NCBI GenBank assembly: GCA_039096225.1
Contig: JBBPEB010000011.1
Coordinates: 682,001 to 746,000, forward strand
Reading direction: 5' to 3'
DNA length: 64,000 nucleotides
Source: Blastocystis sp. Blastoise
Taxonomy: Eukaryota; Protista; Bigyra: Opalinata
The first letter of the stretch is position 1, and every line of letters starts with the position of its first letter. The position numbers and the translations under genes are program-made. Below are positions 13,806 through 42,538 of the stretch, piece after piece. The notes below the pieces were generated by a model. The model ran no database searches. It had not been told where the DNA came from and saw only the letters and a list, made by a program, of their open reading frames with translations.

Positions 13806-16711
13806 ATGGAAGCTTCTCAAACACTTAAAGAACCTTTAGTTACTAAAGAATCAAAAGCAAAAACTATTTGGTCTAAAATTATACATTGTTCTTACGTTCA
13901 TATAATTCTTTACTTCCTTATTGTCTGCGGATGCCACTACTTAGCCTATACCAAGAATATGATGAATGGAGGTATCTTTTGTTGTTATACAGAATTTATC
14001 ATTATTCTTTTATTTCTTATTTAGACTTTACTATTGTGTATAAATCTGTTCAATATCGTTACATCAATTCTTTTTACATCATGCTTTACGTTATTGGCTT
14101 TATTGGATTCCTCTCTCAATTCAAAACTATTCACTATTATCTTAATGTATGTTTTCAGTTGCAGTACCTTGTTCTTATATAACATTTTATATAGATGAGT
14201 GTCTTCAATAACAAATACTATATGAAATGGATGCCAAAAACTTACATGGACTTATTATTAACCATTTGCATTCTTACTGTCAATGTATACTGGTTATATT
14301 ACATCATTCCCTCCATTAAATATAACAATGATGCTCTTACATATATATGTCGTATTCTTGCTCCTTATTTAAATTTACTTTGGGCACTCTCTGTATATAG
14401 TTTTTTTTTATAGTTATTTTATTATTATTTATTATTATATAGTTATTATTATATAGTTTTTTTTTATAGTTATTTTATTATTATTTATTATTATATAGTT
14501 ATTATTATATAGTTTTTTTTTTATAGTTATTTTATTATTATTTATTATTATATAGTTATTATTCTGTACTCGTAATACTATTTGGTCCTCTGTATTCCAT
14601 ATGCCTCATGTATATAATAATATTATTATTATAAATAATTATATAATTATATATATAGGTTTTCCAACTTGTTTTCCATAGATATATTGGTATTACTACA
14701 TTCTTTGTTGTATATATATATATATATATAATTTATATTATTATTATTCTGTATATCTATAGATGATTGTTCACTTTTTAAGTATATTTATACGTTGGAT
14801 GTTAGATGGCCATTGGGAATATTTCTTAAACTTTCATGTATATAGGATAATATATAAAATGATTCATTATTTGTTTTTTTATTATTAACAATATTCTATT
14901 TTTCTATTTATTTATTGAAACATATTTTTATTTATTGTTATTCTTATATATATAGGCTAAATGGTTGAAATTAGATTTCGCTGCTGCTACTACCATATTA
15001 GTTTGGTTCTCTCCTCTCTTTATCTATGCCTTCATAACATCCCTCCCTTGGATAAGAAGAGCATGCTGGGAAGTGTTCTATATTGTATATCTATTCATTT
15101 ATTTATTATTTTATTTATGTATTATTTATTTACTATGTATTTATTTATTATTATTTTATTTATGTATTATTTATTTATGTATTATTTATTTATTATTTAT
15201 GTATTTATTATTTATTTATTTATTATTATTTATTTATTTATGTATTTATTTATTTCAATTATGTATATAGCCTCATGGAGTCATCTGTTTATTTATAGTC
15301 TTCTTTGCTTGTATATATATATTATTTATTATTATTATTATTATATAGTATTCCACTCCATGAATAGTTATCGTTATTTTTCCGTTGGACTTCTTCTCTA
15401 TGTATTCGATAGAATCAAGCGTCACGTGGACAGAAATCTTGTACGTTACAAGATCAATAAAATTGAAACAGATCATGGTATATATATAAACTTGTTCATA
15501 TTTATAATAATTGATATATTATTAATATAAACATATAGGTATTATACGTCTTGATATTTCTCCTAAGGGACCTCTTTATTCTTCTCTTCCTCTTCCTGGT
15601 CAATATATATTCCTCAATATTCATATCCTTCTATATATACATACATTATTTTACACATATATATATATGCTATTATTATTATTATTGTATACTATTCATG
15701 TATTCTTAATATGTATACCTAAAGTATCTTTCAATGAATTCCATCCTTTTACTGTTGCTGATGTTAACGGCAATCACGTGCTTCTTCATATCAAGGTATA
15801 CTATTTATTATTATTATTATTATTATTATTATTATTATTATTATTATTATTAATATATAGCCTATGAATGGACCTAAGACTTGGACAAATCGTTTACATA
15901 CATATATAAATGAAAGAAGAGTTAATGAAATCTCTTCTATTTATGTTGAAGGACCCTATGGTGAAACAGCTGATATTGACCATGAGTCTACTATTGTTTA
16001 TATTGGCGCTGGAGTCGGTTTTGCAGGATTATCTCATCATTTATTAGTATATATATATATCTATATATATTATTATTATTATTATTATTATTATTATTAT
16101 TATAGAATACTGTAAGAAGATATGAAAATGGTGAATTACCTAAATTAAAGCAAATTGATGTTTATTTAACACTTATTGATGATGGTATATACATACTAAA
16201 TAATATATATATATATATATATATATATATATATATATACTATATAGAATATTTATATTGGTATGCTGATCAATTAACTTATTTAAAGGTATATATATAT
16301 ATATATTATCATTATTATTCTATAGAGTTGTTCAATTGTTCATTTACATATAAATATAACATTCTCTAAATATACTGAAAAGAAGTCTAATATATATAAT
16401 AATCAATCTAGCGGATGTTACACTCTTCGTATATATTCTATTATTCATTTATATTATTATTCTATATATTCATATTTATTATGATTCTAATAATATTTAT
16501 TCTCTATATAGGAGATATACTGGAATCAACTCCTACTTTTGAGTTTTCTATTGGTCGTATGGATCCTAAAGTTACTATTCAACAATATAATAAGAGCGAA
16601 CGTCAAGTATTCTTTATTTGTGGACCAAATGCTCTTTATAATAATACCTGTAATCAAGTCTATACATATTTAAAGAAGAGTACTGTATATACAGATCCTT
16701 TCGATATGTAA
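13806..16711 (+). CDS. Ferric reductase / NADPH oxidase-like flavocytochrome (about 14-15 exons, one U12-type AT-AC intron)
   Basis: FHRYIG heme His, WEVFYIPH, PGQYIFLNIPKVSFNEFHPFT, VEGPYG, GAGVGF, GRMD, FICGP motifs. Confidence 0.9.
15623..15718 (+). other. U12-type (minor spliceosome) AT-AC intron
   Basis: 5' ATATCCTT, branch-like TTCTTAAT ending 8 nt before the intron end (terminal AC); removal restores FLNIP-KVSFNEFHPFT. Confidence 0.88.
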
Positions 16712-17304
16712 ATTATAACTAATTATATAATATATTATTATTTCATTTGATTTTGTATATATTTATTTTGTTTTCTCTCATATTCTTACTATTCGTTCAC
16801 TCTTTGCTTTTATTATTCTATTTCTTTGTACTTGTCGATATTCTTTCCAAATTTTTCAATAATGTCAACGTTTTGTTTCTTTATCATTATATTTATAATA
16901 ATAATGAATTCATTTTATTATTCAACCAATAAATTAATGTTCACATTATTATTATTAACCTTTTTATATTAGTATCAACTTGAAAAAACTAAAGATAATC
17001 AGTAATTTAATAATCTCCATTTTCTTTATCAATAAATTGATCACATATACTTTTCTAATAATTAAGTTTTTATGATGTCCAAAAAGTATATAATATTTAT
17101 TTTTTATTTTTTATTTAAAACAAAACAACTTATATAATAATATTAATTCCCTAAAAAATGAAATGAAGTGAAAAATTTATATTGTAAATTAATTGTAAAA
17201 AAGTGAAAAGAAAAGAATAGAGTAACAAATATATATCTATAACAAATAATTCTCTATTATACAAATACTATTCACAATATGAAAACATTATTGTTTATAG
17301 TATA

Positions 17305-41249: not shown

Positions 41250-42102
41250 ATTTTTTAATTATTAATATTTCTTTTTAGGAGAACATATCATGATTTATCT
41301 AGCTTTTTATTTCATGATGATCTCTCATTTAAAATACATTTTCTCTTATTAATTTTTATTATTTTACCATTTTTTTGTATTCTTTTAGTCTGTATTGTAT
41401 AGCTGATGTGTTATGTTATGTATTTAGCCATTTTTATAATAAATAATTCAAATATTAATAAAACGACAGAAAATTGAAAAATGAAGAACAAAAACAATAA
41501 AATATATTTTCAAAGATCATTTTTAGAACATATGAAACGGTTTTAGCGTAAATATTCATTCTTTATTCATTTTTATGTTCAATAGAATGTTATAAGAATA
41601 GTAAAATAAATATTTTTGATTAATGTGGAAAGCGAATGACAATTGTTTTTTTCAAAAAGTTAGTACAGACTATATTTTATCTTAAATTAATAAAAATAAT
41701 AATCCGAGTTTAAATTTTCATGATAAATAGAATAATTTAGAATATGTAAATGATATGTCAATCCACATTTGCTTCATTTCTCATAATTCTATTTTTAATT
41801 GGTCTCTAGTCCAATATATCAATCAATAAAAATCATAAATTCAACATATATTTAAAAAAAAATAATCCATTAAAAGTCATTCAATCCTTGTTACATAATA
41901 AATTACAAAATAATATTTAATAAAAGAAATAGTTGTGTTAACTTAGCTAATGGAAGTATTGTGTTAAATAAGGTAAGAAAAAAATATAACAATACACCAC
42001 GCTACTTACTCTAAAAATGAATAAAACTAAACGCACTATTTATTCTTTACTCTGCGTATTTGTTAACATATAAATCCACCCGAATAATATATGTAAGTGT
42101 GT

Positions 42103-42538
42103 TTATCGGAGACGACGAGCTTCTCTTTCCCATTCGAGGAGAGTTAAAACGTCACCAACAGCGATGGGTCCCTTAACATTAAAATATAAATATAGTAAGC
42201 ATATATAAAATAGATAGAGATGTTTATTTTTGAGAATCAAAGTAGTAAAGTAATTGATTTGAAAATAAAAAGTATTGATATGCCATATTTTGCTATATAT
42301 GTCCCTTAACATTACGGATAATAGAACGGTTAGAATCATCGAGGAAAGTAACACGAACTTGAGTAACGTTACCAGTGTTACCAGTTCTACCGAGGACTTT
42401 ATCGACACGAGCAAATTTTACTTCGTTTTCCAATAGATATTAAAATAAATGTTTGATCAAATGGTAGATTAGTGATAAATAGGTTTCAAGAGAGGAAGTC
42501 TCCGATAATATATAGTGAGATATGTTGATATATACCAT
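42103..42538 (-). CDS. RPS28: 40S ribosomal protein S28 (eS28), 3 exons; both introns non-canonical
   Basis: [65 protein letters not shown]. Confidence 0.95.
42168..42300 (-). other. Non-canonical intron (AT-AC register) bounded by a 14-bp direct repeat
   Basis: TAATGTTAAGGGAC at 42168-42181 and 42301-42314; no register yields GT-AG. Confidence 0.88.
42431..42535 (-). other. Non-canonical GT-TG intron after the ATG-only first coding exon
   Basis: ATG|GTATAT...TTTTAATATCTATTG|GAAAAC; an in-frame TAA prevents read-through or use of the internal AG. Confidence 0.72.

Follow-up and report, generated by a model that had tools for sequence, protein, structure and literature searches.

Few features of eukaryotic genes are as constant as the GT-AG rule. 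Here, we describe introns that depart from it in the tortoise strain Blastocystis sp. Blastoise, in a window of 64,000 nucleotides (contig JBBPEB010000011.1, positions 682,001 to 746,000; C34:682001-746000 in the assembly, G000, which comprises 33.3 Mb in 34 contigs). The window has a GC content of 18-30% and densely packed, short AT-rich introns, and its odd-ended introns lie in genes for a Rab GTPase, a GH3 glycosidase and the ribosomal protein RPS28, together with an AT-AC intron in a NOX-like gene.

Several eukaryotic systems are known to remove introns with unusual ends. In human U2-dependent introns, TG 3' splice sites occur as rare alternative sites beside a normal AG in 36 genes (Szafranski et al., 2007; PMC2374985). 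The odd introns of Physarum polycephalum, which constitute 0.8% of its introns, have kept the U12 5' motif and possess a co-evolved branch motif (Larue, Elias and Roy; bioRxiv 10.1101/2020.10.12.336362). Widespread non-GT-AG introns have been described in Fritillaria borealis (PMC13326754), Amoebophrya (PMC7789003), and diplonemids and euglenids (PMC12621601); in those genomes, most odd introns come from mobile or hairpin-forming elements and have lost the 5' motif, and Fritillaria has extra U2AF paralogs. Within Blastocystis, subtype ST1 has GA-AG and GC-AG introns, in which the major spliceosome tolerates a non-T at +2 while G(+1) and AG are kept (Gentekaki et al., 2017; PMC5608401). For the U12 introns of the same subtype, one study counted 346 (PMC5608401) and another gave a share of 77% AT-AC (PMC10639083). 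Introns of human-associated Blastocystis are almost exactly 30 bp long (PMC12129017, PMC5608401), and three tortoise isolates were characterized with genomes of 26.0-33.3 Mb, a GC content of 21-23% and longer introns (Lind et al., 2025; PMC12129017). The words "U12", "non-canonical" and "noncanonical" are absent from that tortoise genome paper (PMC12129017), and a literature search found no published report of odd-ended introns in tortoise Blastocystis.

An initial annotation of the window had listed seven intervals as introns that cannot be removed as GT-AG, all of them keeping an RTAT donor, and both claims hold. The end letters were taken as they stand in the assembled genome, and every equivalent alignment register was listed for all seven; coordinates, ends and registers agree, a GT-AG or GC-AG drawing is possible in none of the seven in any register, and each begins with RTAT. 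The canonical set for comparison was obtained with our own codon-usage exon finder and an exon-pair junction scan of the window, which gave 81 well-supported GT-AG introns against the seven. Introns without GT...AG ends make up about 5-8% of introns (about one in fifteen). The scan flagged the seven cases, and little else in the window survived inspection; the exon pairs 55461-55515, 60553-60422, 30894-30649 and 17875-17550 were also flagged and proved canonical or undecidable when inspected.

The RNA evidence consists of contigs from two runs belonging to two studies, X1 (organism A) and X2 (a poly(A) gut metatranscriptome), over positions 23000-28900. The question of whether cDNA would reveal other GT-AG junctions was answered for the Rab intron and three GH3 introns, and the RNA carries precisely the odd-ended junctions. 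Exact removal is shown for these four introns, two by explicit RNA joints and two by contig arithmetic. With these joints and with intact exons, the relaxed end dinucleotides proposed for expressed, intact genes are borne out, and the observation is confirmed as real. Pfam searches of the window genes recognized Glyco_hydro_3, Glyco_hydro_3_C and Fn3-like in GH3, Ras in Rab and Ribosomal_S28e in RPS28; the NOX-like exons are too short for Pfam scoring.

The Rab GTPase gene (23751..25132, plus strand, spanning from its ATG to where the transcript contig ends) has a flanking exon that scores as Ras family. Its intron 3 (24089..24139, plus strand) is 51 nt long with GT...TG ends and splits FRQINS/VILVFD. 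X1 and X2 both have an RNA joint, 24086->24138, that leaves out 51 nt; within its slack of 2 nt, it corresponds to 24089-24139. The alternative registers read TG-TT and GG-TT, and no AG occurs ahead of the next exon. The other two RNA joints of the gene, 23795->23842 and 23984->24033, are both GT..AG. No Rab paralog was found in the genome at the DNA level, and the gene is single-copy.

The GH3 glycosidase gene (25238..28114, minus strand) is highly expressed, with a poly(A) site at 25238 marked by the loose poly(T) end of an RNA contig, and three of the six introns in its covered part are non-canonical. The GT-AC intron (25783..25861, minus strand; 79 nt) splits GLS/YTSFEY and is given directly by the RNA joint 25782->25862, which skips 79 nt (GT..AC on the gene strand) at a depth of 1392 in X1 and 1274 in X2. 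An AT-AC intron four bases further on, which would give the same GLSYTSF protein, is excluded, as the transcript reads TC/TTAC at the joint. The GT-AA intron (25963..26009, minus strand; 47 nt) splits the protein after SLDQ. The AT-AG intron (26220..26333, minus strand; 114 nt), which may also be drawn in a TA-GA register, is almost wholly (AT)n and splits FFY/NAG. For these two introns, the X1 contig record 3 (2331 nt, 0-1 mismatch) places its position 558 at 25862, 659 at 25963 and 839 at 26349; together with a canonical 45-nt intron (joint 26044->26090), this means that exactly 47 nt and 114 nt are removed, matching 25963-26009 and 26220-26333, with exactly 15 exon nt left at 26334-26348. 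A 34-nt exon block beside the 26044 joint, bounded at 26011, is found in both X1 and X2. In addition, X2 contains a second GH3 contig set with about 20 single-base differences (25481-25753, 26555-26577 and 27375-27468), its depth lying between about one fifth and two fifths of that of the main set; its source in this gut sample is another allele or a closely related strain.

The genome holds a GH3 paralog on contig C26 (L019, G000:C26:304605-308159) that is 76-79% identical to window positions 25360-26420 and has introns of its own. At the GT-AA site, the window gene reads CTGTAA/TTACTTCC against CTCTAG/TTACTTCC in the paralog, and at the GT-AC site, it reads TATATAC/TTACAC against TCTATAG/TTATAC, the paralog having a GT...AG intron in both cases. 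Since the paralog ends in TAG at the matching sites, each of the GT-AA and GT-AC ends differs from a normal acceptor by a one-letter change, and the cut is still made in place. At the AT-AG site, the paralog lacks the intron altogether and reads FFYNAG (TTC TAT AAT GCT for FFYNA); it carries an (AT)n intron 57 nt (19 codons) upstream of this site and two more (TA)n introns that are missing in the window gene. Three intron positions are common to the paralogs and at least four others differ, the unshared introns being mostly G(TA)nG-like. This suggests a fast gain or loss of introns between the two genes, perhaps seeded by (TA)n microsatellites. Transcripts from an intron-less second copy were considered as a source of the RNA joints and excluded, as this sole GH3 paralog is 76-79% identical and has introns, and Rab and RPS28 are single-copy.

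The RPS28 gene (42103..42538, minus strand) is the sole copy in the genome and therefore must be functional. Its predicted intron 1 (42431..42535, minus strand) is a 105-nt GT...TG intron immediately 3' of the ATG that ends in CTATTG; using the next AG would bring in an in-frame stop. The predicted intron 2 (42168..42300, minus strand; 133 nt) lies inside RNVKG/P. A 14-nt direct repeat, TAATGTTAAGGGAC, gives it 15 equivalent registers; copy 1 of this repeat is the end of exon 2 (42301..42314) and copy 2 the last 14 intron nt (42168-42181), both on the minus strand. AT-AC is the only known end pair among the 15 registers, and on the letters alone it is a choice and not a reading, which RNA-seq would be unable to separate from the other registers. 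A GT-AG alternative (GTTAAG...GTTAAG) would remove VK, and RNVKGP is present in all seven RPS28 homologs whose sequences were read (119 matches in all). A ciliate-type DNA-eliminated segment and a transposon insert, to which the 14-nt repeat might point, were also considered for intron 2 and rejected: there are no other genome copies, the stop codon is standard, and the organism is Blastocystis.

The RPS28 gene of Blastocystis ST1 (L013, GCA_054643315.1) has two introns, ATG/GTGAGT...TTTAG/GAAAAC and AAG/GTAGGT...TCTAG/GGACCC. The first stands at the same site as intron 1 of the tortoise gene and the second falls inside the register window of intron 2, and the 5' untranslated region is conserved between ST1 and the tortoise strain (CACATTTTC..ATG). 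The two tortoise introns are thus predicted from an invariant protein motif, a single-copy gene and matching ST1 intron positions. No protein with more than 88% identity to the tortoise RPS28 was found among 5.8 billion database proteins, which hints that the gene is missing from the annotation of the tortoise strain. The deposited ST1 RPS28 model (MVSFGVPLENEVK..., L013 1501-1858) runs 21 nt into the apparent GTGAGT intron after the ATG; it is probably mis-modelled, since relatives begin ME(N/S)EVK.

The possibility that these ends are artefacts, arising from assembly errors at the end letters, from dead copies or from template switches of reverse transcriptase, is very improbable. The direct repeat around RPS28 intron 2 is a hallmark of reverse-transcriptase artefacts for junctions known only from cDNA, but the RPS28 introns were inferred from the genome. 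Similarly, an RPS11 copy elsewhere in the genome whose donor has A at +1 has an intact twin able to mask it, but in the window, RPS28 and Rab are single-copy, exons are intact, and the GH3 transcript contig fits this copy with 0-1 mismatch, the only other copy being far more diverged. Furthermore, the junctions occur in two independent studies at high depth, the assembly was polished with short reads (PMC12129017), and it is implausible that substitution errors would fall on exactly seven splice ends.

The 81 canonical introns have the 5' consensus GTATATAT, with A at +3 in 91%, T at +4 in 86%, A at +5 in 75% and T at +6 in 93%; they end in (TA)nTAG and have a GC content of 11%. The six odd donors other than that of NOX match this major-type consensus, apart from A at +1 in those that start with AT. 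In addition, four odd introns (two in GH3 and two in RPS28) stand at sites of plain GT-AG introns in the paralog or in ST1. On balance, six of the seven are probably major-type introns with eroded end letters, in which a signal other than AG determines the 3' cut, and the NOX intron is a normal U12 intron. In such a mechanism, point mutation would have changed the first or last letters (G(-1) to A or C, A(-2) to T, and G(+1) to A), one intron, the GH3 AT-AG intron, would seem to have arisen inside a (TA)n tract, and the introns would still be cut at the exact ancestral position. Since removal would take place there despite the changed letters, we infer that something other than AG tells the spliceosome, most likely that of the major type, where to make the 3' cut. 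The likeliest cue would be a short fixed distance from the branch site, and a mismatched first/last base pair would not be rejected. The near-fixed 30-bp introns of human-associated strains make such a distance ruler plausible in the genus.

The human TG sites resemble this situation, as GT...TG introns are removed by what appears to be the major spliceosome with G at -1 kept; they differ in that the tortoise strain has, in an essential gene, constitutive introns for which TG is the sole usable 3' site, and AA and AC ends are found there as well. The GA-AG and GC-AG introns of ST1 differ too, because the changes in the window hit +1, -1 or -2. A broader form of the major-type reading is offered only tentatively, and it may well prove wrong: the main spliceosome of this strain would have lost its check of the end dinucleotides, using a branch-point ruler and leaving the first/last pairing unproofread, so that GT and AG could erode harmlessly under extreme AT mutation pressure and exonic (TA)n, on expanding, could become intron. 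The last step is suggested by the GH3 AT-AG intron, which the paralog lacks and which consists almost purely of (AT)n.

A minor spliceosome is present alongside the major one. The intron of the NOX-like (ferric reductase type) gene (15623..15718, plus strand; 96 nt) begins with ATATCCTTC and carries TTCTTAAT, followed by 9 nt and then AC. By its sequence, it is a textbook U12 AT-AC intron of the ATATCCTT class, and it should not be counted among the odd ones, as the initial annotation had done. It is in frame and stop-free; its retention would add 32 hydrophobic residues with the frame unbroken. A scan of the window for further introns with RTATCCTT and a branch site found none besides NOX. 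The U12 5' splice site RTATCCTT is thus present in one of the seven introns, and the other six donors, GTATTTTA (that of Rab), GTATATAT, GTATATTA, ATATATAT, GTATATAT and ATATATAG, have no C at +5/+6 (0/6). For the branch element TTCCTTRAY, expected about 8-20 nt from the 3' end, NOX has TTCTTAAT at 9 nt; the partial matches in the others are AACTTAAC (12 nt), ATTTTAAT (9 and 11 nt) and TCCTTTTT (twice). 

The search for small nuclear RNAs (snRNAs) that the initial annotation had proposed recovered minor snRNAs in the genome: U11 (62.9 bits), U6atac (63.8 bits), U12 (46.8 bits; below the Rfam cut-off, yet full-length with its boxes intact) and, weakly, U4atac (29.7 bits). U11 starts with AUAAAGGGC, keeping the AAAGGG box, and U12 has AUGAGUAAGGAAA and the branch-site box GUAAGGAA, both RNAs being canonical; they would therefore still call for CCTT and TCCTTAAC. 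A canonical U11, judged by base pairing, would not pair with GTATAT or ATATAT donors. The major snRNAs are canonical as well: U1 starts with AUACUUACCU, U2 has GUAGUA and U6 has ACAGAGA, and an altered U1, U2 or U6 is excluded as the cause on this ground. A loss of second-step factors is likewise excluded, as Slu7 and Prp18 are both present.

The initial annotation had attributed all of the odd ends to an expanded or degenerate minor-type, or hybrid, spliceosome. The minor snRNAs and the NOX intron stand in favor of this; the other six introns, with no C at +5/+6, canonical U11 and U12, major-type donors and four sites that are GT-AG in relatives, do not support it. Stated as a rival, a minor (U12-type) or hybrid spliceosome with its 5' motif relaxed to RTAT and its 3' end set by distance from a U12-type branch site is a doubtful explanation. 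NOX proves that a minor system works, ST1 is rich in AT-AC U12 introns (PMC5608401, PMC10639083), and the AT-AC, AT-AG and GT-AA pairs are those of the non-canonical Physarum U12 introns (bioRxiv 10.1101/2020.10.12.336362). However, the +5/+6 CC that six of the seven lack is the most constant U12 feature, and it is missing here though U11 keeps its AAAGGG box; the odd donors are indistinguishable from the major-type consensus; and among the four sites that are GT-AG in relatives, the ST1 donors GTGAGT and GTAGGT are clearly U2-type and the paralog GTATAT is the local main consensus. Switching from U2 to U12 is regarded as very rare, which also counts against the minor route.

Several points nevertheless weigh against the major-type reading. 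AT-AC, AT-AG and variable 3' ends are classic U12 behavior. No positioned branch-site motif was found in the canonical introns. The Rab donor GTATTTTA might have arisen from GTATCCTT by C-to-T decay and might still form wobble pairs with U11, and a U12-to-U2 conversion in ST1 could mimic the argument from orthology. The minor system itself is altered, since the 5'-splice-site box of U6atac reads GCCGAGAGA where AAGGAGAGA is expected (L002, G000:C21:544821-544937, minus strand) and could pair with only +4/+5 of ATATCCTT; this divergence speaks for the minor route. The same holds for a YTTAAY/TCCTT element 8-21 nt from the 3' end, which scores higher in the odd introns (Mann-Whitney U test, p = 0.003 for the seven and 0.012 without NOX), a weak excess chosen post hoc with n = 7. 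TTAAY is found 9-20 nt from the 3' end in five of the seven odd introns and in 9 of 70 canonical introns; for TCCTT, the numbers are two of seven and one of 70. This excess is compatible with either a strong branch site close by or one of U12 type, and it does not recur in the AT-AG introns of RPS11 and Slu7 elsewhere in the genome. In comparison with the U12 introns of Physarum and ST1, the window shares AT-AG, AT-AA-like and AT-AC pairs, a 3' end thought to be set by branch-site distance and, in NOX, a true member; unlike in Physarum, six of the seven introns are without the U12 5' motif, U11 and U12 are unchanged, and the odd introns make up a larger share.

A further explanation holds that the introns are guided by RNA structure or stem from mobile elements, with paired ends or a transposon-like insert with target-site duplication; it appears improbable. 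The GH3 GT-AC intron has ends that form an 11-bp perfect inverted repeat (GTATATATATA/TATATATATAC), and its predicted fold closes with this stem. The ends of canonical introns, GUAUAUAU and AUAUAUAG, are complementary in register (e.g., 50043-50188 and 17384-17491), many introns being almost pure (TA)n, and within-intron end pairing reaches 4.58 consecutive pairs against 3.98 with permuted partners (p about 0.001), only slightly above them. The 14-nt direct repeat around RPS28 intron 2 may be added on the same side. Yet the ends are paired in the folds of only one of the seven introns, by which end-to-end RNA stems are excluded as a general cue; besides the pure (AU)n hairpin, no fold beats shuffled sequence and the z-scores are not significant. 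No further copy of the RPS28 region exists in the genome, and the GH3 intron matches only (AT)n microsatellite. No introner or miniature inverted-repeat transposable element (MITE) family, as judged by related copies, terminal inverted repeats or target-site duplications, was found in the genome, the sole marks being one 14-nt direct repeat and one (TA)n inverted repeat. The introns also differ from the nonconventional introns of euglenids in their conserved RTAT donor, which points to normal 5' splice-site recognition, and in having paired ends in the fold of only one of the seven. They resemble those of Fritillaria, Amoebophrya and the euglenozoans in the accurate removal of many kinds of end dinucleotides from essential genes, and are unlike them in that RTATAT donors are kept, the ends trace to single-base changes or (TA)n tracts, and no element family was found. 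Unlike all of these precedents, the tortoise Blastocystis is a stramenopile.

From exceptions to the GT-AG rule one can learn which spliceosome components actually recognize intron ends, and those described here lead back, base by base, to ordinary introns (TAG to TAA, TAC or TTG; GT to AT) in essential, highly expressed genes. As Blastocystis is a culturable protist with published genomes and RNA-seq, the cue for the 3' splice site and the strictness of second-step proofreading are directly testable. Gene finders restricted to GT/GC-AG will mis-model such genes, and a missing RPS28 would lower the apparent completeness of a genome. The paralog comparison also hints that (TA)n microsatellites may seed new introns.

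Beyond the window, the same scan was run on 21 other loci of the genome, where 59 of 72 pairs were clean GT-AG, along with a few real oddities. A Pfam search with PF00163 aimed at RPS9 returned an IMP3-like gene with canonical introns. The clearest oddity, and one in favor of the major-type reading, is in the gene of the second-step factor Slu7, which has a 137-nt AT-AG intron, ATATATAT...TTAATAG, that splits the conserved AYYD/PKSRAMR (L033, G000:C22:363410-363546, minus strand) and can be drawn in the registers GA-TA, AT-AG, TA-GA and AT-AT. Two RPS11 copies (L029 and L030; G000:C31:51441-51767 and 143968-144295) have identical exons and differ at one donor, GTAAAT in one against ATATAT in the other (G against A at +1), which likewise speaks for the major-type reading; they also differ at the 5' end, where one has an in-frame ATG and the other needs an upstream exon. 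Similarly, a (TA)n-rich intron between two good exons on contig C16 (L021, about 1490-1664; G000:C16) has no GT near its donor, and GA-AG or AT-AT are its sole in-frame choices.

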